Shown one piece after another: positions 35,973 through 56,875 of a stretch of 64,000 nt of DNA. The DNA lies in contig OZ116701.1 of the NCBI GenBank assembly GCA_964199315.1, positions 29,760,001 to 29,824,000 of the forward strand. The letters are read 5' to 3'. The position numbers and the translations under genes were made by a program. The notes beneath the pieces are model-generated. The model was not told where the DNA came from and ran no database searches. It worked only from the letters and a program-made list of their open reading frames with translations. Source of the stretch: Orbicella franksi (lineage: Eukaryota). The stretch's first letter is position 1. Each line of letters begins with the position of its first letter.

Positions 35973-38900
35973 GTAAGTGAACTTTAGTTCATTTTTAACT
36001 TCCCTGGGTATTTCCTTGATCTGTTAGTTAAATAATGTTAAGATCGTGAACTAGGTGGTACAACAATGGTAAATGACGCTAATAGTCACAACAAGCCGAC
36101 GAAAATTCTTGCTTCATTTTAAGGATTTCTGTATCGTCCTCTTCTAAGCCTCCTAGTATGGTTATACTGACTTAAGAGCCTATTGATGCCGATGCTAAAT
36201 AACAAATGACGGTTCTAAGGCTTTCGTATACCATGGTCAGTCGAGACAATCACACACACAAGTTCCGCTTATTCGTCACATTCAGTGTACAACTGAGTCA
36301 AAAAAAAATAGACACGGAATAGCACAGTGTTGAACAAAGACACTTAAGGTGTTAATACAAATTTTCTTCGCAAATAAAACATGAAGCTCGATGGTTTTCG
36401 TCCGTTTTCTGTCCATTCGAGAAGAATAAAGCAAAGAATATTGTCCATTTGTAACAAGATATAATATTATACGCAAACGCCCTAATAACATCCCTAGCCA
36501 TCAAATCGTTTTGAATGGCGCATAAATTTATCAGAAACAGACCTATCAGATTATCGTTTACGATCATTTAATTATCCGAGCAAACAATAGTCCCATTGGA
36601 AAACTTTTGGCTTGTTTTGTGTGAAGCGGCTTTATCCTTCTCTCGTAGAAAGAAACGCCAAAAACGAGAGATTCCATCCCCCTACCCCTTATTTCCCTGC
36701 TCCCCCAATCACCTCACTGCATTTTACGTTCAGGGGGTGCACGATATTATATTTTTCTACTTAGGCGACTGTCACAATCCACTTGGCATGGAAAATGGCG
36801 ACATTCCTGATAGTAGCATATTTGCCCCTGTGACTGGCTACGAGGAGGATCTGACATTGTTCGGAGCTCATCGCGCAAGACTGAATTCGTCGTCGGGATA
36901 TCGCACCGATCCGAAAGCCCTTAGCCACGCACGTAACCAGTCACTTTCCCCTTCCCTTTTGGTCATTCTTCCGAAAGAAATGGTCGTAACTGGCATCGCT
37001 ACCCAAGGCCTAGGACAAGAGTGGATCACCAAGTATAGAATGTTCGCTGCTGATGATGCTGGAAATTATAAATCTATTGAGGTGAGAAGGCCCTATGATT
37101 CAGACCCAAGCCCCACTCTTCGAAGTGAGGAGCTCCTCGCAACCTCACGTCGCGAGAACTATTATTTGACTATTCTCTGAGAGAGAGTAGAACATAAGCT
37201 TGTAGAGTCCAAGGTAAATTCTAACGTAACAATTACACTCCACTGGATTCAGTTCACCCACATATTTAGTTTAATCAAAGCATTTAAAGGGATCAGTACA
37301 GTAGCTTAGATAACTTTCCATTTATCTAAGTAACTCGCATAATTTGCTTCGAATCTTTGCTTGTGATGGTAAGCTTACAGTTCAGATAATTTCTTTGAGG
37401 TAACGGCCTCATAAGGAACATGTAAACAGTTTTACTGAAGTGAGCTAGCCATCTGAACAGTTTTAAGTTGTAAAATGAAAGTGTTTTAAGTTGTAAAATG
37501 AAAGTGCATCCTGCAAGTAAAGGTTTGCTACCTTACTCTTCCATGGACAATTACACAATATTTGTGTTGTTTCTGGTAAGCAAGTGAGTCTTTTATCAAG
37601 TTGACAATTTTACGTTGACTAAGCCTTGTTTGGCTGAAATTTAGGATCAGAAAGGGCTAGTTTAAGACTAGTCCGAAGATTGCTTTAAAAACGTCTAAGT
37701 TGAAAAATGTGTACTGAGTTACTACAGTAGATAAACATCGTGAGGTGGCACTTTCGTGGGGTCTCAGTAGTAGCTGTTGTTGTTTTTGTTGTTTTGTTGT
37801 TGTTTTTTGCTAGGAATTTGGTGGTAATATTGATGGCCACACTATTAAGTTCAATACAGTTCCATTACCGGTAAAAACCTCTGAAGTCGTACTGATCCCC
37901 ACAGATTGGCATGATAATATCGCTTTAAGGTTTGAGTTATACGGCTGTGAACCAGGTAAGAACCTCTTTGGTATCTTATCAAGTATGAATAGACGACGAA
38001 CGGGCATCAAACATCGTCGTTTACCTCGTCAAAACACCAACTTTTCAAGTATTGCAAGTGTCTTTAGAAGATAAATAATTGTGGGAAAAAGAGGGAATGA
38101 ATCACTTTGCTTTGGGTAATTGAATTCTTCTTTTAAAGCTATCATTATGTTGGATAAAGATGTATACTTATCCGTGGTCAAGCATCTCATTGCTGTGCAG
38201 TCTGTAAGAAAAGAAACTTTGTTTCATGGCGAACGTTAAAACTTTGGGTTTTTTTTTCTGTTCTTAGTTAATTATTTCAACGTTTGGCTGAAGGTACGGA
38301 ATACAAACTTTCTGCTTAGCTACATGAATCCCAATGATGAAGAAACCAGAGAAATCAAGGGCTTGGTTTTAAATCAGGTATGTTCAAAACAAAACTAGTT
38401 TAAGTGTTTTGCTTAAATTTGTCTTCCTGAAGCTTCTTTCTTACTGTCCCGTTGTAGGAGCTACAATACTAAGCAAAGGCTTAGAGTTTCAGGTTTATTA
38501 AAAAAAAAAGTGTTAGTGTCTCACTTTTATTTTTCCTAACTGTTATTGCTGTAGGTCCTCGCTAACTGTTCCAGTGAATGAAGTACAATCGTAGGCAATT
38601 ACACCCGCTCTCAGTGTTACGTGCATGGGCGACATCTTTCGACCATCTTTCCACATGCCATCTTTCGAGATGCTATGAAAACGGCTGAAAGACCGTTTTA
38701 ACTGTGAAACTGGCCTTTTTTTTTCGGTTATTAGCGGAACAAATGACAAATAAATGATAACTAATGACCTCAAATGAATGAAGAAGATTTTGGACTTTGC
38801 ATGTCTCCCGATTTATGACATAATTCAAACGATTTTAGTGTACTCTATCGGTTCTCGATGGTGATTTGGGCTGCTACCAATCAGTTAGTATTCGAAAGAT

Positions 38901-41900: not shown

Positions 41901-44900
41901 GGCAAAATTTCGGCGCAAGCTAACCCCTGGCGCATTGTTGACTTTTCTTTTGACATATTCCTTGTACAATCGTCTCTCGGAAAGTCTGATATATTGCGTA
42001 CGTAATTTCTACAATCTTGGTTAGGATTGTTGGGTATAGTTTGTCAAAATTTAAGTGGAAAAAATAGCAAAACCACACGCTGAACAAATACATGCTCACA
42101 ATTGATCATTTTTTGAGTTTCTGATCCAAGAAAAAATAATTCTCTCTTTCCTTTATCGTCAGTTATTGCAATCAGGAGCTCCGCTTTAGGCTTGGCTAAA
42201 TCTATATATTTATTCTGCCGGTAATCAGCAATCAAGTAGTCTCCACATTTTAACGATGGAGAACAGCTTTCTATTGTTTCTGTTTGTTTTGATGATTTAG
42301 TCCCCCTTTATACATAAACGACCTCCAAAAAGATCAAGTGAGCGTGACAGCCGAGTTGGAGATCTATTGCATAGCATCATCCACTCAGGACATTTTGAAG
42401 CAATTTCGGATCTCGTTGACCAGACAGGGAGACAAACCTGTATTTGGAACTACTATTCTGAAAATTCAGCATCCAGGTAAGTTTTGTGTAATATCCTTAC
42501 GAAATTTCAAACAACAGGTTTTTAATTGAGTGCCATAAAACCAAATCGAAGTAATCAATCTGGCCAATCACAAAAGACACAGAAGGTCCAAAACTCGAAT
42601 TAAATACATTTAGTTGACGAAACTGCGGGAAAACGTGTGCGAGTGACCAACGATGGTTAACTAACTTTATTTTTGGTGTGGCTTCAGACTGACAGAACTG
42701 AAACGAGTTTAACCCAATCTTGTATCATATATGAGCGAAGCAAAATCAATAATTACTTTTCGACAGTGAGCTGAAAACCGCTCTTTGCGTTTTTGTTGCC
42801 GTCTATGATTTAAATATTTATTGTTAATTTGCCTGTTTGTATTATTTTGTTCTTATTTTCGCAATACCCCAGACGTTCAAATGTAAATTTTACGGTAATT
42901 TTTGTTGCCGTATCGATATTGCGACTCGAGGAAGAAGCATGCGGCTAGCGAATATAAAGCTCGCAGCTTGTAGAGCCGTGTATATGAAAAATGATTGAAA
43001 TGAAAGTGCCAAAGTACGTTTACCTCGAGGGAGGGGCGAGGGAGGGGCAGTTGGTAATCTACATTTTGTGGTCACCATCGGTCAGTATAAGACAATACCA
43101 GGAGGGAAGTAACTCTGCGATAAGCATATAAAAGGTAAAACTGCCTACCGTGTGTTCCTTAAGTTCTAAGCTTTAATTCAATATTTCTGTCTCGCCAGTT
43201 AGTGGAAAATGTCGACCCCCAGCCGTCCAGGTTTCTCTCGGCAAAGATCCATTTAATCCTCGGCTGGTAACATTCGACACAAAAAAACCCAGAAGCAAAT
43301 ACACTGTGAATGCAAGCTTAGATCCGGACTGCAACATCACTGCAATGATAGCGTACAGCTGGGAGATCGCAGCCGTTGACAGAGAATCGGGAATTTTCAA
43401 TCTGATATATCAATTTGGTAAAACCCAAAAAGGGAAAAAGAGGGAAGACAAGCTACGTTTATGGAAACAGCATATCCGACCGCCTGGATTACAGTATATT
43501 AGATGCATCGCAAGGAATGCTGACGAAACAGGTGTATATTCGTTCACCTACGACTTCGGCTTCTTTGAATTAGTGCCAATGGAGGCATTAAACTGTACAG
43601 TAACACCGACACAAAGAAAGCCCACTTTGGATAAATTTACTGTACGTTGCATAGGTGGATACAAAGACATTGAAGCAATTGGCTATTCTGCCACGCTGGC
43701 TTCGACTAGCAAGCCTTTTGGCTCAATTACAAACCACTGTTCGGGAAAGGAACCGGAGGCCGGACTCGAAAGACAGGCGGAAATCGACCCTACCAAGCCT
43801 CTGGTTCTTTCAAATTGGAGTACTCCGACCGGAACGATAACTCTACCTGCTGGCAATCCAAAGGAAGATTATAGTGTTCTGGTAAAGATGGAAGCTAAGT
43901 ATTTGTCGATGCCTTCACTCTTTCATGATGTTGTTGTAAAGGTAGGTTGGTATGTAAGTAAGACATGAGTGGAGCTAGTTTATCACAGTCCAGAGAAGTC
44001 GTACATGCAATTTCATATAAACAATATTCATAATTTGCTCCGAGGTTTTTTCTCCTGGTTGAAACTATTCTTGGCCTAAATGACCAAAATTTCAAAATAC
44101 CATTTAGCCTCGGCGCGGGATTACATTTGAGTCAAACGTACGAGCAAAGTGCAATATTCCATGTAACGTGGCGTGTTCATGTTTTGGAATTCTGAACATC
44201 ATAACGCAGACTGTTGCAATAGCACAAGCGTGTACCGAATTTGAAAGGATTCATTCACGTGCGGCCGTGGATTCCCTTATTAAAAGATCGGTGATGTTCG
44301 TCGAAAAATTTGAATTAAACTCCTAAAGGAGACCAATTTAGGCGTCGCTCGGCTTTATTTGAACCCTAAAAGATACAACTTAAAACGGAATAGGCTTGAT
44401 TACAAGCCACTTTCCAGGAAACGAGCCCGCGCTATAGTAGACCAGGCTCGAGAGTCCGGCGGAAATCGAGCCTAAAAACGGAAATAAGAGCGTTTCTTTT
44501 GTTATTATTTCTTCGAAGGCTTCCTAAAAGATACTTTGACTTTATAATCGGGGGACGATACTCTCAGAAAAGCTGGGTGGGGGTGTGCTGTCCACTTCCC
44601 AAAAGCCCTACCCTGTTTATGACTAAAATCTGCCATTTTTGCTACTCTATTTATGATCTGACCAAAAATTCGATACCCTATTTACGACCGTTGCTAGCAA
44701 AGTTGCCCTAAACCTAAGTTATGAATGGCGTTTGTTGATGGTCTTATCGATAATGATGATAAAGTAACTTCTTTTAAGGAACATACCCAGTTCAACATTA
44801 TAGAGTGCAAAAACCATATCATATTTATCACCAAAATGGCCAAAATCGCCTAAACCGATACCCTGTTTATGACCAAAATGGCTGAAGAACCATACCCTTT

Positions 44901-47900
44901 GGGGCCGCACATACCTATATAGCTCGTATAAGGGAGTACCTCCCCGGGTTTATAATATATCCCTCAGCGATAGGAGACCCCCTGGGAGGGACATTGACTC
45001 GAATTGTTGCATTAGCGAATGAAAAGTACATAATTGTTATTTCATTTCTCTCATTTTAGGTTAACATTCTTATGAAAGAAGTCACAATTATTAAAAATCT
45101 ACTAGCATCCGACCAGCACGAAGAGGCTGCATGCAACCTGAAGATTCTCCAAATCATATTGGACCAGACAGAACGTAACACCACAGTTAGAAGAAAGGTT
45201 GGTTGGGTTAAATATCATCATAGAGCTCAGACCTGAGCAACGGAGATCTTACAGACCATACTACATACCAAAATTTGTTGTCACATCATTTTAGAACAAG
45301 GCTGATTTGGGTCAGACAGGTAAAAAACAATTAGTTACTAACAATGGGCTTGTTACAACGAGCATTAGCGCATCGTTATTTGACAGCTGAGTTTGGTCAA
45401 GCTGTAAACTTATAGGATATTGAAGAATGAGCACTCCGGCTAGAATTGAACTACATTTCACCTGGCCATGTACCGCAAAGGGTCTCCCGCCGTTATAAAG
45501 AATGAGCAGAAAATCACTCTACATGGATTTTCCGAGGGATTTCACCCATTCGACTCGCTCTGCTCAGGCACATCATGCTAAAAGGGTGCACAAGTTTAAT
45601 AAAATAATGTTGTCTCAGGCTGTAATTGTAGCGGTAAGATTTAAAATATGTTCCAAAATTATACAAAACTTTTCGCCTGGTGAAACAACAGTCCGTCGGA
45701 AACGCAGGGGCCTAAAGGTTAGTGTTCTGAACTTTCGGATCGAGTGCTCGGGTTTAAGCACTGGCGGGGGTCACTACCTTTTATTTTGGGTGGGGGGGGG
45801 GGAAGACACTTTACTATCAAAGTGCCTTTCTCCATGCAGCTTTATAAGAAGGTACTGGGGAATTTAATGTTTGGGGGAACCTGTTATGGACTAGCGTCCC
45901 ATGCAGAGGGGACTAGAATTACTCTTAGTCGCTTGATTCTACGGAAACCGGGGTAAGCTCCGACGGAGACTTTTATACAACGTCTAGTATTTGTTTACAC
46001 TGAACGTATTCATGATTGACCTGTTTTCTGTTTCTTTCCTAAAGACTAAACAGGACATAACACGAAGCATAATGCATATGAAGATTAAAACCGTCCAGCA
46101 GTTGAACCAAATGGCAGTCTTTGTTATATACAGTAACAAAATCAAAGCAGAAACCACGAAGGAAATCCAGGTACGTTTTATATCATAGCACCAGTGGTTT
46201 AGAGTTGCATAATTTTGATCATCTAAAATGTTTACGGCTAGACTATTCTAAATGTTGTGCAAAAAGCTTTGTAAGTTTGGCGAAATTATTATATAAGAAA
46301 ATGGCCCTCCAAGCTATGTAATGTTCCAGTGTAAGACCATGCACCGACATAGAAACAAAAGACTTCAATTTATCATTAATTTGATGGACGAACACCCTGA
46401 GTTTAGTGATTTGCTTTATTTTTGTAATAAATCACATTTTGGACACAGCTTGCACTGGTAATTCTGTAAAGTATGTGCACCCATCTCATTCACGTTTTTA
46501 AGTTAATAATGGCGTGGAACTCAATTTTTTACAGGAAAATTCTCTTGACATTCTTAAGATGGCTGTAAACTTTGTGAATGAACAGAGCCCCAGAAACGTC
46601 TCCAACATCGACAACACAACGAAGAACCTAATACAGGGTGCTGCACTGATTCTTTCTTCTGCCTCACAGGATAAAAATGAAAAAGTAAATACCGATTTCT
46701 TCTCTCTAAAAATGTTTAACATGAAGGTATCAAAGAATTGTGGCCTTATGGCGCATGGGTTAGATTTTGAATCAAAAGGACAGAATTCGAGCGTCATCAA
46801 GAAAGGTCGTTGTTTGTGTCACTGTAATCTGGCAGAGCCTCTATCCAGAACTGTTAACAAAACAAAAACAAAACGCTAGAAGCAGGAGGGAAGGAGGGAC
46901 AAGAGCGTACGACACTCATTCTTGGGAGGAGATCAGTACATACTAGTCGCTTGCAACAAAGGAAACTAGCGTTACCCAACTGTCTCAATTTTCTCTTTCA
47001 AGTGTCCTGGCTCAATATATTGCCAAGCCGTGCATGACTTCAAAGTTGCTACCCTTCTTTACGCAGATAACAAGAAAGGCAAAGAAATCGATATACAACA
47101 TAAGTGATATGAGACGCAGGTTTATGAGTTCTGCTCCAGGAGAAAATAAAGTCCAATTGTACTCCAGTGGCGTTTCCGTTTTACTGGCGAAAAGGAAGAT
47201 CCAGAGTTTCAATGATAAAGTGCTTCGCATAAAGAGAGATGAAGTGCGCCTTCCCAAGGACTTATTTGCTGGAAAATGGAGTGATAACCTCCAATCTGGA
47301 TCAGTGCAGGTATTTTTCTAAAAAAGCACTAGACAGCAAACTAAACAAAGCAATGCCAAAAAAGAAACAGAAATTATCCATTAGAGAACCAAAAGTAATA
47401 CTAGGATATTTCAAAATCTAGAACCCTGTCACGTGACCTTATCAATGTGTGTTACATGTGTTATGATAATAATAGTAATAATAACTTTACTAAGTTGTCA
47501 GTTTCTTCAGCTAAGAGAGAATCCCCTTATAATAGCAGACATTTTATTGGAATTTATTGTAAATGATGAATAATATAAATAATGATTAATAATATAAATA
47601 ATGATTAAATAAATAAATAAATAATAATAATGGCAATAATGACAGCTACCTAGTTACGTTTCGGTAGGGTGTTCAATTAAGACGGGTTTGTTACGATTCC
47701 AGGGAACTTTCACCCCACGGTATTTCTCATTTACTGAACATTAACGGGGCCGCGTACCGATTAACACCATAAAATAATTTCTGCATAACATGTTATTTTT
47801 CAGATCATTAGATTCGATCGCAATCCTCTTTTCTCGAGCCAGGGAATCATCTCGAGAAATATATCAGCTATTGACATCACATTTTGGCACAACAACAACA

Positions 47901-50900
47901 CCAAGATGAAGATTTCTAATCTAAGCAAACCAATAAGAATTCTGTTCTCTAGAGACCCTGACGAAACTAGGGACCAAGGTGCATCTGATGGAATTCTGTT
48001 TCTCAAAAGAAAAGAAATGCGTTATCACAACGTCTCTATTCCTTCTTACGAAGCGGTAGTAACTGTGCGAATTAAGCCTGAGAAGGACATTTCACTGCGC
48101 GTCTACGTCGGGCACTACTCAAGACCAACGCCTCAACACCATGACTTGAACGTGACTCTGCCAAACACCACCCGTTTGACGTGTTCAAATTTTTCCAGGG
48201 AATGGAATGACAGATGTTCGCCTCGTGACCCATATGAATTTGATCTTCTACCCAATGTCACAGGTCATATTGGACGCCATGTTATTGGAGTCGAAATTCT
48301 TGAGGATTCCGTTGAAATCCCCGAGGTGTCTGCAGGAATAGCAGGCAATGATGCAGAGGCTTTAAGAAGACAGACACAGTATTGCGTTAAGGTGAAACCA
48401 GCTCCAACTCCTCTCCCGGTGAAAAAGAACGTGCCTCGCCAATTCGATTCTAAAACGGACGTTAGGTACACATTGTTTGTTACGGTGGGGACCTGCGTAT
48501 TCTGGGACAAACTGAACAAAAAATGGTCAGCACGAGGAATCCAGGTTAGTTTATTTTGCCGTCTAAGGAAGAATCCCACCTCCATCTTCCATCTTAATTT
48601 TGAAAATCGTCTGACAGAAATTGACAAAAGGGTACAGGTGCAACTCATTTGTTACTGCACACTTAAATATATGGAGAGCGAATGAGCACTAGAAAGTGAA
48701 CTCAGAACCCGTCTTTACCGCATTCCATAGCCTCAACGCTGCTTGGACAACCACACTGAAGGGGGTTGCATCTGAAAAGTACAGTTACTTGTCGAAAGCT
48801 ATGAGAAGAAGTAATTTACACATTCTTTGCAAAATCATTGCGTCACCTTTATCCAGTGTAACAAAGATTCACAGTCCAGTCATCGAGAAAATTAGGCTCG
48901 TCAATCTTTGTCTATTTATATAACAAAAAAAAAATACTCAGACAATTACATTGAGAAAGACATTCCAAATATAGTACATTCAAAAATTATTAATCCAAAG
49001 CTAATTTGCTGCGCTATCGATTGTTGGCTTTGTCAATTTCTGTGTGTGATTAATGTGGCTTCAAATTTGGTACAGTCAGTAAAGAACCGCTCTATGTACA
49101 AGACAAGTTAGAGAAAAAAAGATGTAATTCGCACTCAGCATTGATACTGACATAAAAACTGCAATGACTTACAACGTATTTTATGATGACCCGTTTAGGT
49201 TGCTACTGAAAGTAACGAGACGAGGGTCCACTGTCTAACCAATCATCTATCAACATTTTCTGGCGATTTCTATGTGGTTCCCAACAAGATCGACTTCTCC
49301 AAGGTCATAGCAGAAATACCACCCGAAAACTTGGTCGTCCTCTCCACAATTTGCCTAATATTTGTGGTTTACGCTGTTGGTCTTGTGTTTGCTAGAAGGG
49401 CAGACAACAGAGACAAAATGAAGGTAGGTTTTTTTTCTCAGAATGGTGAATTTTGTGTATACCAAGCACTTACTCAACTTGCGACTTCTCCTGATTTTAG
49501 CATCCCTTTTGAGACAAAATAAGAGGTTTGCCACATACACGTAAACAGCTCTCGTAGAATTACTTAGCTATTTATTACTTTTACTCGGTTGGTAAAGGTA
49601 AATTAACCGCCTTAGCAAGTAAATGAAGCTGATGTTCGAGCGTGCCCCCTCAGTCGAAGGAAAGTTATAGCAAGTTTCGTCGTTTAAAAAACTGTAATAT
49701 ATTAAGTCAGGCTTTTGAGCCTAGAACAGCACAGGATTTTCTTTTTACCGTCATGATGTTTTTAGTTTTCTTATCTCCTTATTTCAATTTTAACACAGAT
49801 CGATTGTTCAATCATATCATTCCCTCATCGCGGATGTTGATCACCCAATTTGATCTTAAGAACACTGAGACAATTAGCTCCTAAATAACTATCACTAAAA
49901 ATTAAAACGAATGGTTATTTAATGATTTCATAGCAAAAAATTTGAAAATTTTTTTTTTTTTTTAAATATTCTCTATTTAACAGGTTGTGAACACCAAGGT
50001 GAGTTCTCAGAAAGGAGAACATTCCTGTGCTTATAACTATGAAATATCTATCCAAACCGGAATGTGGCATGATAATGGCACCACTGCTAGCGTCAGTGTA
50101 ATACTTTTCGGTGAAGACGAAATTAGTGATACAATATTATTTATGGACCCCTGGAAGGAAAGGAAACTTTTCACCCGTGGCAGTGTAAACACTTTCAGCT
50201 TCGACATTCCACGTCGACTTGGACAGGTATACAAGGTAAAGATTTGGCACGACAACGGTGGTAAAAGTCCATCGTGGTTTTTGTACGAAGTTGTGGTTAA
50301 AGACGTCTCTACCGACGAAAAATGGCATTTCGTGGCCAACAGATGGCTTGCTGTAGAGAGCGCTGATGGTGCGATCGATGTTGAGATCCAAGCAGCCTCG
50401 AAAAGAGAGCTGACGAGATTCAGCAATTTGTTTCAGTGGCGGGCCGTCACTAACTTTGCAGATAAACATCTGTTTCTCTCAATCTTTGCCAGGCCGCCAC
50501 AGAACCCATTTACACGTTGCCAGCGGCTAACCTGTATGCTGTCAATCATACTGGTTTCTCTAGTAACCAACGCCATGTTTTACCAGTTTAAAAAGACAGA
50601 AGACCCAAGCTCCTTTCAACTAGGACCACTAGAACTGAGCTTGACACAAATCATAATCGGTGTTCAGAGCGGACTCATTGCGCTACCTGTCAACATAGTT
50701 ACAGTGATGATATTTAGGAACATCAAGAGAAACATATCCCCAGATAGCTCTAAAGAGATGGAGACCTCCACTACAGGAAGAAAAAACACCCAGGGCTTCT
50801 TACCTCGCTGGTTTATTGTCGTTGGATGGTTCCTCTGTTTGACAGCTTCAGTTTCGTCGGCAGTGTTTGCGGTTTTGTACAGTTTCGAATGGGGAGCGGA

Positions 50901-53900
50901 AATAGCGAATCGCTGGTTCTTGTCAGTCGGCGTCTCTTTGCTTCAAGAAATATTGCTTACAGGACCGATCATTATTCTTTTCAACACTTCAATCTTATCG
51001 TTGATAAACAGAAAACCAGCTGCAAACAATGACATCGAAAACACGGCACAGCAAGCAAACTTAGTGCACATGGTTCAAGAAGATTATGGGCAAGTGATCG
51101 GCCAAAAGCCTTCTACAGAAACGCTACTGAGAGCAAGAGGTTTAAAACTACAACAGAGAAAAATGCGGCGCTTCTTCGTAGATTTAATGCTCTACGTAGC
51201 CTTTGTTGTCCTACTGATGACGGTATGTTACGCAAACCGTAAACCATCCACTTATAGGCAGACAAAATCACTCAAGGATACATTCAGAGGATTTTCCCAG
51301 GTATCGTACCAAGACATATTTGGGGTTTTCACATTATTACATGTGTAATGTGTAAATATCTTTTTAGTTAATAATAAAGTACACAAGGTTTTTGTGCTGT
51401 AGTGCAGATCAGTGAAGCCCTTCTCTATGCTTTTGTTTAGCTAATATTTGCCGTTTGTTTGTATGTTTGTTTGTTTGTTCTTCCTGTCTCGTCAACTGAT
51501 CTGATACTTGTTTGTAGATCTGTTTGTCTCTCTATGGCACCGTCCACTCTAAGTTTTAGAAATTTGAACACGCAACAATCACTGGTCATCTTGGATTTGT
51601 GTTTGAGGAAAACTCGAGCAGGGAAATCACGTGATTATCGTGATGTCATCGTTTGCGAAAATTTCAATTTTCAAAATGTTTTCCGTCCACACTAAAACGC
51701 AAAGGTCGCGTTTTCAAATTCCTCCGGTTTGAAGAACGTTTCCGAAAAGTTCTGTTTTCGGGTCAGATTATCGTGGACAGTAGCCCTAACATTAGAAATA
51801 AAGCTACGTTCTCAAATTTCTCCCGCGTAGTGTGGACGGAGCCTGTCTGTTTGTTGTATGTTTGATTATTTGTTTTCTTTTTCTTTGTACTTGTCGGTGT
51901 TTTATGAACGCTAATGAGATTCAAATTCCTTACGATAAGCATCACAAAGTGTCCTCATTGGTAAAAAGTCACCAAAACACAAACAATTCTGTCAAATATG
52001 AAGTAATATGAAAATGTCAAATAATCCTGCCAAATATGAAGTACTAATTAAACAATACCTGCGTTCAACCCTGGACATAAGTGGGAAGGCTAGTTTATGA
52101 ATCTTGCGCCAAGATCTCTTTCCGGGTAATAAAATAAGTAAGCCCTAAGGAGTCTAAATTGTTATCATTTAAACCCAGGTAAAAGATGCCAAATCGTTTT
52201 GGGCCTGGTTTGAGGAAGAACTAGTTCATGGTCTTTACGACAAAGGGCAGTCAGCTGACGGAAACGAGACCGGGATGATAACTAGCAAAATTGGTTTCAT
52301 AGTCGGCCTGCCAAGGATTCGGCAAATGCGTATCAGGTAAGGTTAGGCTTCTTGTTTATTATAAACCGTAAAAACAAATACCATGAAAATCGTTAATGCC
52401 AAGTGTTGAAGCTAAACACTACAAGAAAATATGAATTTTGGAGATGAGCGTACGGAGTAAGTACCGAGGTCAATAAGGCGCACTGCAGAAAAATCATCAC
52501 TATTCATAGAATTTTTTCAATTTGACACAATGAGAAGCAAGTGCAGATCTCATCACCGTTAATTTGGTATATATTTACAATATTTAAGGCGACAGAGTGC
52601 CGGAGGTTGCACGGAAGGAGCCCTCGTATATTTGAAGCCTCGAAATAGTTTGAGCAAGATGAAACTCTGTAATATTCTCTTCTTAAATTTAGGATGCTCA
52701 AGAGCTTAAACTTATTCTGCAATTTTAGATAGCCATGGAAACACAGCTTTAATTTTAGCAGGGATATAAAATTAGAATTCGAGTCAGAGTTTTCTACGCG
52801 TCTATGGTCAACTCAGCTGCACCTCCTTGAGAATTTCTTCATAGAAAATGTTGGTCTCGTGGTCTTATTGTTGAAAAGTGCACGCTAAACGATTGCATGA
52901 CTTATAAGACTGATTACCATTTGTTATCACGTAAAAATTTTCCTGTCTCTCTTCACTGAGCTATTTGAGTATCAATGTTTCATTAGTGTATTAATATAAT
53001 ATGAGCAGCTAACTTGTAAATGGGAGTGTTATACTGCTCTTAATACACAGAATCCACGTGTGAGGTAATTCAAGTGGAACCCGTGTTACATACCCACTTC
53101 AACCAATGTCTTCCCGCGTTTTCCTCTTCAAATAAAGACACAACGCCATATTATCAACCCGGTTGGAAGCCAATAAAAACCTTAGCTGAGGTTCCATATC
53201 ACTTTCAAGATTCTTGCCCAGAACCGTGGCACTATGAAGAGCCAGTGAGCGTTAGCGAAGTTTTTCTTCCATATGGTGGCGGCGGCTACATTGCTAAGCT
53301 TGGCTACGACCCCTCCACTGCTTTAAGGGTCAAGCAAAGTATTGAAAAGAACGGCTGGATAGACGGGAAGTCAGCTGTGGTTATAGTCGAATTTGTAGTT
53401 TTAGAGCCCGCCAATTTGTTGCTTAGCAACGTCATGCTCATGTTGGAGAAGTATGATAGTGGTATGAGAAAGACAAGTATTAATGTTATTCCTGAGCTCC
53501 TATTTCACACGTCTGGCTCCGCTGTTCAGACATTCTATCGCGTCTGCATTCTCCTGTGGCTTATTATCATCTTGGTGTTACTGGTTATAGAGATTGTTAG
53601 ATGTTTCAAGCGGGGTCGTGCATATTTCAAGAGCTTCTTCAGCTGGGTTACCATGCTACAAATTTTGTCGTCTTCCTGCGCTGTGCTTATAGTCTTCGTG
53701 AAGGAGAATAGCCTGAAAGCTTTCTTACAACGAATACGCGATAATCCATTCGGTGACTGGACTGCATACCAATTTTTCGCGTGGTCAAGTTTCCAAGAAG
53801 TTATTTTGTCCATCACAGTTGTGACAACAACCATCAATTGTCTCAAACTCATACAGATTAATCGTCATGTACACGTTATGAAATGGACCCTACAGTCAGC

Positions 53901-54912
53901 TTGTCGTTACCTGTGCTCATTCGCTATTGTTATTATGATGCTTGTTCTTGCATTTGCCCAGCTCGGGACGCTTCTGTTTGGTGCAGAAGATGGGGAATAT
54001 GCAACGTTTTATTACTCTCTCCGCACGGTACTTAAAATGGGTATTGGAATCGGTAAGATACAGTTTTCAAAGATGAATGGAAGTGTTGAATCCGAAGTGT
54101 TTGCCCCCATTTTTCTGATGGCATGCATGTTAAGCATGACTATCGTCTTTGCAAACACTTTTATTGCAATTTTGGATGACGCGTTCCATGAGGCCAGCGG
54201 CAGAGAGTATCCAGGGGATGAGCTTGGTGCCTACATGAAAAGCTATTTGGTAAACCGTGTCAGGAGAGCAAGCACTATGCCTGTCAACAGAGCTTTCAGA
54301 AAATCTACGTTTCGAAAAACCATTCGCAGAAAATACACACCGCAACCTCCAAAACGTGAATTACAGCAAACAATGGAAGATCATGCTGCTCCACAAGAAG
54401 AAAGAGCCAAGCTAGCAGAAACTGAAAGTCTTTTGAGCTACGAAAGTCTATGCCCTCAAACAGATTTTGAAAGAATACCTTGCATCCAGATAAATCCAGC
54501 AAGTCCTACCAATAGGAGAAATGAAAACAAAAAAATTAAAGTTTTGAACACCAGCTGTGCACAAGCAAAGATGAACGCCTCTTTTAAGCCTCCGCCAACC
54601 GATGAGGAACTACTCTCCGATATCGCGAAGATCATGAAAACCGTTCGGTCGGATTTCACAAGATGTTTGTGGGAAGGTGAAGAGTGGTACAATTCTCGCT
54701 CCTCTTTCTCGTCATTTGACGACAGTTTTGCAGGCCTGGATAAGTCCGCGTCCATTCTTTCTTTGATTCAAACTTGTCAAGAGGACGCTCCCCACATTCA
54801 GACGTGGAGCTACGTTCGTGGCATGGAGAGGGTTCAAGGAGGGTCTATTCGTCGAACGCTGAGGAGCCATACCCAGAGTTACACTAAGGTTTTGGCAGAG
54901 AATTACGTATGA
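35891..54912 (+). CDS. PKD1L2: Gene C: polycystin-1-like paralog (PKD1L2-like), 16 exons; carries an apparent nonsense lesion at 52338-52340 (2211 aa if intact, about 1590 aa as sequenced)
   Basis: Exons 35891-35972, 36765-37081, 37814-37955, 38268-38377, 39369-39427, 42301-42476, 43199-43941, 45060-45197, 46045-46170, 46535-46726, 47067-47309, 47804-48544, 49199-49423, 49984-51300, 52179-52341, 53051-54912. Total 6636 nt, phase-consistent; the only stop found is the TAA at 52338. The 46726 donor and 47067 acceptor are less certain. Confidence 0.85.
36765..37955 (+). CDS. Gene C F5/8 type C (discoidin) domain, exons 36765-37081 and 37814-37955
   Basis: DCHNPLGMENGDIPDS..VTGIATQG..W / EFGGNIDGHT..LRFELYGC; second exon 142 nt as in gene B. 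Confidence 0.9.
37461..37506. repeat. Perfect 23-bp tandem duplication
   Basis: ttttaagttgtaaaatgaaagtg x2. Confidence 0.85.
38268..42476 (+). CDS. Gene C SEA-like domain, exons 38268-38377, 39369-39427, 42301-42476
   Basis: NYFNVWLKVRNTNFLLSYMNPNDEETREI..YLKDVPGFLSVKLHKF..VSVTAELEIYC. Confidence 0.7.
39890..40145. repeat. Degenerate interspersed repeat
   Basis: caaacac/gtgtttg inverted cores and atcttctcaatcgaaactaaa..taattaagatcagatatccaaa; recognised from memory as a common coral repeat, not searched. Confidence 0.4.
40842..40978. mobile_element. Short TTAA-flanked MITE
   Basis: TTAA|ggttggtttccacatgatc ... gatgatatgaaaaccggcc|TTAA. Confidence 0.7.
41100..41442. mobile_element. MITE with imperfect TIRs of about 60 bp
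   Basis: aatggaccttttcggcg..gccattttgaattctattatttcaaata / tatttgaaacaacagaattcaaaatggccgccgaaaacgtccatt. Confidence 0.75.
41498..42010 (-). mobile_element. Interspersed repeat with GC hairpin near one end and internal (CGTA/CGTC)n microsatellite (Helentron/DINE-like layout)
   Basis: Hairpin gcgcaccgaaggcgcgc at about 41517-41534, microsatellite at 41604-41632; class assignment and far boundary are inference. Confidence 0.45.
42515..42784. mobile_element. Degenerate MITE
   Basis: ggtttttaattgagtg at left, cagtgagctgaaaaccgctct at right (imperfect TIR; right end resembles the 8911 element terminus). Confidence 0.55.
43199..43941 (+). CDS. Gene C single, internally shortened REJ exon
   Basis: The N half aligns to gene B exon 22517-, the C half to the end of gene B exon 24260-24875. 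Confidence 0.82.
44549..44948. mobile_element. MITE with cgggg..tactc / gagtac..ccccg termini
   Basis: cgggggacgatactctc at left, gggagtacctccccggg at right; internal accct.tttatgac repeats. Confidence 0.65.
45060..47309 (+). CDS. Gene C helical post-REJ / GAIN A exons 45060-45197, 46045-46170, 46535-46726, 47067-47309
   Basis: Phase-0 open exons that parallel the four gene B exons. Confidence 0.68.
45698..45965 (+). mobile_element. tRNA-derived SINE (Deu/Nin-domain-like core), degenerate
   Basis: tRNA-like head (ggcctaaaggttagtg..gggtttaagc), core acactttactatcaaagtgcctttctcc, tail atggactagcgtccc..gaaaccggggtaagctcc; homologous to the copy at 63722-63963. Confidence 0.75.
47560..47632. 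repeat. AT-rich tandem repeats
   Basis: (aataatataaataatgatt)x2 followed by TAAA and TAA runs. Confidence 0.7.
47804..48544 (+). CDS. Gene C exon: GAIN B and first half of GPS (no furin cassette, GPS Cys2 replaced by Ile)
   Basis: Acceptor tttcag|ATC; ORF 47906..48685; donor CAG|gttagt. Confidence 0.9.
49199..49423 (+). CDS. Gene C exon: GPS (HL/S) and TM1
   Basis: VATESNETRVHCLTNHLSTFSGDFYVVPNK; 225 nt. Confidence 0.9.
49984..51300 (+). CDS. Gene C exon: PLAT and TM2-TM6
   Basis: ORF 49987..51348; donor CAG|gtatcg. Confidence 0.92.
51535..51844. mobile_element. MITE with cgtccac termini
   Basis: ggcaccgtccactcta at left, tagtgtggacggagcc at right; internal ccgtccacact and ttttcaaa repeats. 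Confidence 0.7.
52179..52341 (+). CDS. Gene C TOP-start exon containing in-frame TAA (52338-52340)
   Basis: VKDAKSFWAWFEEELVHGLY..GLPRIRQMRIR*; phase-1 donor G|gttagg at 52341/52342 is homologous to gene D G|gttaga. Confidence 0.82.
53051..54912 (+). CDS. Gene C last exon: TOP, S2-S6 channel, tail (frame open)
   Basis: Acceptor acacag|AA (phase 1); ORF 53074..54912. Confidence 0.9.
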
Positions 54913-55071
54913 TTAATCCGTAACGAACTATTATATACTTACCCTAATACATAGATTTTGAATTAGTTAAGTGCTGTTGAAAAAAATACTTCTTACAGTT
55001 GAAATCACGTATACAGAAAGCAATCGAGCTCACTGACAACAAGCCAACGATGAAAGTTACGCGCGAGTTGG

Positions 55072-55077
55072 AATAAA
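55072..55077 (+). promoter_or_regulatory. Candidate polyadenylation signal of gene C
   Basis: AATAAA 160 nt after the stop codon; supported by position only. Confidence 0.4.
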
Positions 55078-55225
55078 TTTGACATGTTATTTTAACCTCA
55101 ACAACATGATATTAAGTGTAAATTCTGGGATGCTGTTAGTGAGTCCATATGAGTCAATACGTGGCTGTGTAGCCGCGCGATGCGGTTCAAGTCGATACCC
55201 ACAATTTGACCCTTGCTCAACATAG

Positions 55226-55316
55226 AGTCTCCGGTAGCTCAGTGGTTAGAGCATCCGACTAGATCACTGAGGGTCGTGGGCTCAAATCCGATGATCTGGG
55301 ACTCGGATTTTTTTTC
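55226..55316 (+). mobile_element. tRNA-derived short SINE or tRNA-like Pol III unit
   Basis: A box TAGCTCAGTGG (55235-55245), B-box-like GGCTCAAATCC (55279-55289), then a run of 8 T; I could not fold a proper anticodon or acceptor stem. Confidence 0.65.
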
Positions 55317-56875
55317 GAGTATACGTTTCTCCCAGAATTTGCACTAAATATTTTAACCTCCGTTGCATTATTTCTGTTCGGGACACGCTGCTGGTTGTTC
55401 TTGACAGAAAATAATGAGCGATTAAGTTCATATGCCTGCACCTCCGAATGGCCAGGAAGGTCAACCAATAATAGCTTGCGAAGACTGCACGGGACCGAGC
55501 TAGCTGGAGTAGTAATGTGGGGGCCTTATCCGTTGCATGGCAACAGATATGGATAGATGATGACGGGAAAAGATCAACAAACCAACAATATTTTCCTCGA
55601 TTGATTCATATATATGTTATAGTCTGACGAAATCCTCCTGTACTCGGTAAACGCATGGAGTTGAAATAATATTTATTCAAGCTAAATTCAAGCATAAAAA
55701 GTGAGATGTTGAGAGATTAACTGACCGTCCCGTTGTGGAAGGGGTAAGAGCAATTACTTATTTTGCCGTGCCGTAGATACAATATAAAGTTTAATGTCGT
55801 GTGGAAAAAAAATTGAAAGTTCGCTGATTTGGAATAAGATTTTAGCACGGTTTAATGTTTGCCGACCTGCAGTAATTTTGGTCATGTGAAGTAGGCAGCA
55901 GAACTGCAGATCACGGCTGCCGACTTTGTTTGAAGGATATTAGACCTGAAAACCATTTAGGCATTTGCTTTCGTTGACTGCTCTGTTGATACACGTCTCT
56001 GTTAGAATAGCGTCTGTAACCACCTTTTTTCGAATTTCAATCCTTCCTGTGTCATTTTTACATGTAAAGGTAAAGAGGCACCATCAATAGCAGTGGAAAC
56101 CAGCAAAATGACAAAGGATTTTTACAAATAAGCATTGTTTTCGTTCAGTAACATTTGCATAAAACTCTGTTAAATTAATCAGTGACATCATTAACATGTC
56201 TCTAAAAGTAGATATTAATAACATATTTGTAACAATACTAACTGAACGAAGGTATTGTCCTAAATCAGAGAAATAATTAAAACTAATTTCAATGTACTTT
56301 AAAACATTTTATTGTCCTTTTTCTCTTACATTAGAATATATTACCTCAAGGTCGAAAAACTAGGCAAACAACTCAAAAGTAGTTTAGTGTAACTACAGTA
56401 ATCAGACTCAAACATAAAGACACTAACTCTTTTTGCTTTATACTAAGAGATTTTTTAAAAATAATTATAATCTGCAGTACCAAAATCTGCACGTATTGAT
56501 GCCGCCATTACATTGGGTCCAAATTCCATTAAAAAGATCTAATTTTACTGAGAGACACCCGCCTATAAACGGACAGTTTGGGTTTTCTTTTGAAATAGAA
56601 AACTGACCTTAGTAGCCCCAGATATTAAAATATTTTTATGTTTAGAAACAATTTTTGGATAACGGAACGCAGCGGAATTGGGCTTTAGGTGGGTAGAAAC
56701 CGCCAATCTACTTATGGAGTAGGTAACAATACAGTAACCAACTTGAAAATGTTAGCCACTCTTAACTCTGTACAGTGCCAATTTTTTTTTCGCTAACTGT
56801 CTTTGAAATGTTCTCTTGCATTATATTTCAATGCAAATAGATAGAAATAACAAAAACAAACATGAACAAAGGGCT

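Follow-up and report, generated by a model that had tools for sequence, protein, structure and literature searches.

A single base at position 52338 places a premature stop codon at the end of the penultimate exon of a polycystin-1-like gene, here called gene C, directly ahead of an intact exon for the channel-like domain. The gene lies in a 64,000-nt stretch of the Orbicella franksi assembly (hereafter the window). We regard a young, derived nonsense allele of gene C, representing an ordinary loss of function while other individuals and related species have the codon intact, as the likely explanation. The T at this site is probably a property of the reference haplotype and, judged by word content, also occurs in a small number of further runs, labelled as the same species or as one other, and we are similarly confident that most sampled corals of the species complex and all orthologues keep a sense codon. 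The stop is not a feature of gene C in general, but of the reference haplotype and of a minority of the samples.

Gene C within a cluster of polycystin-1-like genes

Four polycystin-1-like (PKD1/REJ-family) genes are found in the window, with A, B and C on the forward strand and D convergent with C. In each of them one exon encodes a PLAT domain, and the last exon is long and contains Polycystin_dom and PKD_channel. The following features are relevant here (slashes in motifs mark boundaries):

6955, + strand: end of gene A
33798, + strand: end of gene B
49984–51300, + strand: gene C exon encoding the PLAT domain and five hydrophobic segments (TM2–TM6); 3' end from RNA joints, 5' end predicted from acag/GTT
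52179–52341, + strand: gene C penultimate exon, 163 nt, phase 0 at its start and phase 1 at its end, from RNA joints in runs X15 and X16
52342–53050, + strand: gene C last intron, 709 nt, GT..AG, spliced out whole in RNA run X15
53051–54912, + strand: gene C last exon, 1,862 nt, open; remaining polycystin/TOP domain, S2–S6 and pore (PKD_channel), C-terminal tail
54912, + strand: end of gene C
58705–56876, − strand: last exon of gene D

The domain order of gene C follows that of the polycystin-1 family (PKD1, PKD1L1-3, PKDREJ and sea urchin REJ): a putative GPS-type HL/S cleavage motif ahead of TM1, a PLAT domain behind TM1, another five hydrophobic segments, and then the polycystin/TOP domain and an S2–S6 channel-like domain. 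Here, the translation of 49190–49450 contains the motif HCLTNHL/STF followed by a hydrophobic segment, with no Pfam GPS match at E<=0.01. The PLAT/LH2 domain is present in the first cytoplasmic loop (PF01477, E 5e-18, ORF 49987–51348), and the polycystin (TOP) domain between S1 and S2 (PF20519, penultimate and last exon) is followed by the S2–S6 bundle (PF08016, E 4e-24). The penultimate exon encodes the start of the TOP domain (…FWAWFEEEL…GLPRIRQMRIR) and covers positions 5–55 of the 199 in Pfam Polycystin_dom (PF20519). By hydropathy, a single segment follows the GPS-type motif and another five lie in the PLAT exon, and the last exon has four that are clear and others that are weaker.

The frame of the last exon is open from 53053 to the stop at 54910–54912, and its product matches PDB structures of polycystin-2, PKD2L1, PKD1L3 and PKD1 across S2–S6 and the pore. 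Its PKD_channel score is 86 bits versus 120–126 bits in genes A, B and D. A protein look-up of this ORF product, in a collection that writes M for GTG starts, returned no exact-match record. Likeness to the family extends to the tandem multigene arrangement, as described in sea urchin (PMC1934368), while the gene C ORF pieces searched differ in giving no Pfam REJ or GPS match. For REJ, the search covered the ORFs in 43306–48685, a region in which a 2,471-aa homologue gave a weak tblastn match at 47906–48550. Near the presumed 5' part of the gene, ORF 36596–37180 has a weak, sub-threshold match to the F5/8 type C (discoidin) domain (E 0.003), a hint at the make-up of the gene C ectodomain.

Gene C is expressed and spliced as proposed. 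A 1,115-nt contig of RNA run X15 joins 51300 to 52179 and 52341 to 53051 and continues to 53713, which also shows use of the weak homologous donor AAG/GTTAGG. This spliced contig, of a C-type haplotype, bears out the gene model of the initial annotation (donor 52341/52342, acceptor 53051, no extra exon). Within the last intron (709 nt) RNA depth drops to zero. In run X16 (organism label C) a contig contains the joint between 51300 and 52179 but breaks off at 52333, five bases short of the variable base, and has no loose end; a coverage gap or a branch in the assembly graph may account for this. Raw reads of RNA run X22 left gene C uncovered, as only five aligned, all on the repeat at 51400–52000. 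A frame-restoring micro-exon within 52342–53050 had been raised earlier; none was found, and the idea is rejected since the X15 RNA joins 52341 directly to 53051, with the intron removed in one piece.

Highly repeated sequence was observed at 51400–52100, within the intron that precedes the penultimate exon, and at 55050–55400, just past gene C. Contigs of both DNA and RNA runs are interrupted there, with many loose ends, and their summed depth climbs to as much as about 14,000. These repeats probably belong to a transposable element family.

A stop codon and a predicted competing donor at one site

The penultimate exon of gene C ends with CGT (52329–52331), ATC, AGG (52335–52337), TAA (52338–52340) and G (52341), followed by gttagg (52342–52347), exactly as first described. 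The corresponding exons of the paralogues all end in phase 1 (gene A, AAA AAG G/GTAAGT; gene B, CTT CCA G/GTAAGA; gene D, CAG CCA G/GTTAGA), and the acceptor cacag/AATCC at 53050/53051 likewise requires phase 1 for entry into the open 1,862-nt last exon. The T at 52338 makes both the TAA and a CAG/GTAAGG donor, the latter placed five bases ahead of the homologous one:

52338–52340, + strand: in-frame TAA, last full codon of the penultimate exon, ending 1 nt before the last exon junction
52338, + strand: variable base, T in the window (TAA) versus C in X1, L009, L010 and four orthologues (CAA/CCA)
52337–52342, + strand: predicted donor-like GTAAGG made by the T; the exon end would be 52336, phase 2
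53061–53063, + strand: TGA that would end the frame if donor 52336 were joined to acceptor 53051, read directly

Use of the upstream donor would give AGA ATC CAC GTG TGA, i.e., R-I-H-V-stop, as the initial annotation had stated. Its further claim that a phase-2-compatible AG is lacking also held up: none was found near the gene C acceptor on reading the window sequence. No ORF of at least 30 aa overlaps 52338. The new donor CAG/GTAAGG scored 7.6 bits, the native donor 3.1 bits and an in-frame upstream candidate, TGC/GTATCA, about −8 bits, values that come from a generic consensus matrix and serve for rough ranking only. By this ranking, the new donor would be expected to compete strongly with the native one.

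We propose that a single derived C>T change at 52338 turned CAA (Gln), with which the complete codons of the penultimate exon end, into TAA. If the native donor is used on the T allele, TAA would stand 1 nt before the last junction; if the new, consensus-stronger CAG/GTAAGG donor is used, a frameshift would bring up a TGA 11 nt inside the last exon. By either donor, the product would end within the extracellular polycystin/TOP domain, without S2–S6 and the pore, and the T allele would encode the ectodomain, the GPS region, TM1, PLAT, TM2–TM6 and about one quarter of the TOP domain. The stop falls at about position 56 of the 199 of the polycystin/TOP domain, and in homologues of 2,200–2,300 aa the stop point aligns at about residue 1,500–1,710. 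Its placement after TM6 and before S2–S6 agrees with what was noted earlier, as the PLAT domain and five hydrophobic segments precede it and PKD_channel lies in the last exon.

In vertebrates, junction-dependent decay spares stops at or after the last junction. Both stops of the T allele lie at or past the last junction, and such decay would not be expected by this rule. In solved polycystin complexes, the PKD1-type subunit gives S5–S6 to the pore, which suggests that the T allele would be null for channel function and, as predicted from its coding sequence, a loss of function for the channel-like part. Two polycystin complexes, PDB 6a70 and 7d7e, are among the structure matches of the gene C last exon.

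Alleles, orthologues and the age of the stop

Reads and contigs of sequencing runs were aligned to window positions 49700–55400, a comparison in which contigs speak for the presence of an allele and not for zygosity or frequency. DNA run X1 yielded one contig of 3,060 nt (52038–55097, depth 14) with C at 52338; apart from this base, it departs from the window only at 53757 and 53762, three differences in all. Moreover, JGI metagenomes were scanned for a pattern that allowed Y at this base, and the scan returned two coral contigs, L009 and L010, both with CAA and 98.8–99.2% identical to the window over 14 kb. The X15 RNA contig has nine variants in common with L009 (C at 52338) and one unlisted mismatch in the piece ending at 52339; it almost certainly derives from a C allele.

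The distribution of the T was assessed by a word test with a 121-nt query (52278–52398) comprising nine sampled (indexed) words. All nine were present in at least five runs: X7 and X8 (both possible assembly sources), X4 and X5 (organism label A) and X10 (label B), those listed coming from four samples and four studies. At least 15 runs contained exactly seven of the nine words, with the same two missing, and carry organism labels C or D or are coral metagenomes. Among the runs listed, all four with organism label A and one with label B hold every word, and no label C or D run does; X1, the C-allele run, is absent from this list. Within 52278–52398, the sole position at which X1, L009 and L010 depart from the window is 52338, so that, in the simplest reading, nine of nine words mean T and seven of nine mean C. 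For the test to prove T, 52338 must fall within one or more of the sampled words, and a 61-nt query made up of site-overlapping words only gave fewer than two sampled words, a result that fits two T-overlapping words only if sampling is context-dependent.

The direction of the change follows from orthologous loci. With the last exon as query, relatives of 83–88% identity were recovered, several of them on long contigs. At all four of the loci L005–L008 a C-like gene is followed by a convergent D-like gene, an arrangement which argues that these loci are orthologues. Their exon ends read AAG CAA G/GTTAGG (L005), AGG CAA G/GTTAGG (L006), AAG CAA G/GTTAGT (L007) and AGA CCA G/GTTGGG (L008). All four syntenic orthologues thus have C at the site, within CAA in three of them and CCA in L008, which marks the T of the window as a derived CAA>TAA change (Gln to stop); the same C>T turns GCAAGG into GTAAGG. 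The acceptor cacag/AATCC is kept in three orthologues (L005–L007). Conservation of the convergent C/D pair in four other coral assemblies suggests that the tandem polycystin-1-like cluster is older than a synonymous divergence (dS) of about 0.7.

The reference haplotype shows further differences. At 49316/49317 the window is without 9 nt (three codons, approximately I-Q-H or Q-H-L) that are found in L009, L010 and the four orthologues. By this comparison, the haplotype with the stop has also lost these codons, in frame, from the stalk that links the GPS-type HL/S motif to TM1. Two derived changes private to the window lie 5 nt apart: 53757 GAT>GAC (synonymous) and 53762 ATT>ACT (Ile>Thr). X1, X15, X16, L009, L010 and the orthologues have T at 53757, and likewise at 53762 save for L008 (G). 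Both changes may be linked to the stop allele. At 53507, CAC (His) is found in the window and X1 and CCC (Pro) in L009, L010, X15 and the four orthologues; by alignment, this non-synonymous change lies in the TOP domain, is derived and is common to the T haplotype and the closest C haplotype.

Given these data, T at 52338 is probably genuinely present in animals. It seems unlikely that the T is an error of the assembly consensus or of sequencing and that the organism has CAA. Every directly read sequence (the X1 contig, L009, L010 and the four orthologues) has C, and the support for T is word-based, with the 61-nt query casting doubt on the words that overlap the site. Against an error, however, stands the bimodal outcome of the word test, with nine of nine words in at least five runs (four samples, four studies) versus seven of nine in at least 15, as well as the private derived changes of the window (53757, 53762 and the 9-nt deletion), as a real divergent haplotype would have. 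The initial annotation had named a sense codon in reads as an outcome that would speak against its reading; CAA is indeed seen in X1, L009 and L010, but the T of the window is still backed by the words of at least five runs.

Constraint on the channel exon bears on the age of the allele. With the window and L005–L008 compared in all 10 pairs, the dN/dS ratio of the last exon is 0.21–0.27 (about 0.24), and the proportion of non-synonymous among lineage-specific codon changes is 12/31 for the window, 15/44 for L005, 19/46 for L006 and 32/79 for L007. Judged by these ratios, purifying selection has acted on the channel exon, and constraint on the window lineage is not relaxed. Polarised by the orthologues, the comparison of window and L009 gives nine derived coding changes on the window haplotype, five of them non-synonymous including the stop, and six on the L009 haplotype, four of them non-synonymous. 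An X1 haplotype only three bases away, together with the intact constraint, argues that the stop allele is young. The last exon would consequently be open because the allele is too young for decay, and its openness needs no special explanation. Of the four outcomes offered by the initial annotation, these findings (a derived T, a near-identical C haplotype and a constrained channel exon) favour the recent null allele.

Fate of the truncated product and significance

A different view would be that T has become fixed, or at least common, in the species of the reference (organism label A, perhaps B) and that gene C there encodes a stable, functional receptor without a channel, made up of ectodomain, GPS, PLAT and six TM segments. 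We consider this improbable, although all listed runs of labels A and B hold all words and those of labels C and D do not, and although the predicted stops lie where decay is not expected under the vertebrate rule applied here. Natural shorter forms do occur in the family, as sea urchin PKD1/REJ proteins have 1–11 transmembrane segments (PMC1934368). However, two of the label-A samples are possibly the assembly source and the samples are few, the last exon is unrelaxed on the window lineage, so that any such state would be very recent, and a cut inside a folded extracellular domain (Polycystin_dom, about 56 of 199) is an unlikely end for a stable product. Slightly more doubtful still is the full form of this scenario, in which T is fixed in the reference species (perhaps also in the sister label) and marks a very recent transition from an 11-TM protein to a stable, GPS-cleaved 6-TM receptor without a channel, doubly enforced by one base. 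The PKD1/REJ family is tied to gamete recognition in other marine invertebrates. If true, fixation of T with such a receptor could have a bearing on reproductive isolation between closely related corals.

Full-length protein despite the stop, by UAA readthrough or by the in-frame donor TGC/GTATCA (exon end 52329, phase 1, four codons dropped), is very improbable. The idea is invited by the open last exon and by an upstream GT at 52330 in the correct phase, but this donor ranks far below the two others (about −8 versus 3.1 and 7.6 bits in the rough matrix), and the open exon is accounted for by the youth of the allele. UAA is the least leaky stop, and we know of no readthrough context corresponding to the GAAUCC that follows it after splicing. 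Both routes were rejected on these grounds. Finally, we reject as barely credible that gene C is an old pseudogene with the stop as one lesion among many, to which the lower PKD_channel score (86 versus 120–126 bits), the 9-nt deletion and several non-synonymous changes might point, since the gene is transcribed and correctly spliced in RNA, the deletion is in frame, and the syntenic orthologues keep all three exons examined open with a last-exon dN/dS of about 0.24.

The young nonsense allele in gene C resembles segregating nonsense variants in other reference assemblies: a single derived base, an intact allele elsewhere, an undecayed downstream exon and a stop where junction-dependent decay is not expected. 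It differs from them in that the same base also makes a consensus donor 5 nt upstream of the weaker native donor, so that two routes lead to the same truncation. As in the truncating PKD1 mutations of human polycystic kidney disease, a premature stop removes the C-terminal channel-like transmembrane bundle of a protein of the 11-TM polycystin-1 type; in contrast to the human gene, however, gene C is one of at least four coral paralogues, and redundancy is likely. The truncated product could still retain some function.

What we describe is a young nonsense allele in a member of a tandem family, caught in the reference, and not a new kind of gene. For annotation, this means that gene C should be recorded as a full polycystin-1-like gene whose reference allele has a premature stop, and neither as a short gene nor as two genes, with the 1,862-nt exon not taken for a separate channel gene. 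Position 52338 also offers a compact natural test of the cnidarian spliceosome and decay machinery, with a stop 1 nt from a junction and a stronger competing donor. Should the allele prove to be confined to one species, it would mark a very recent loss of a gene from the expanded coral polycystin family.
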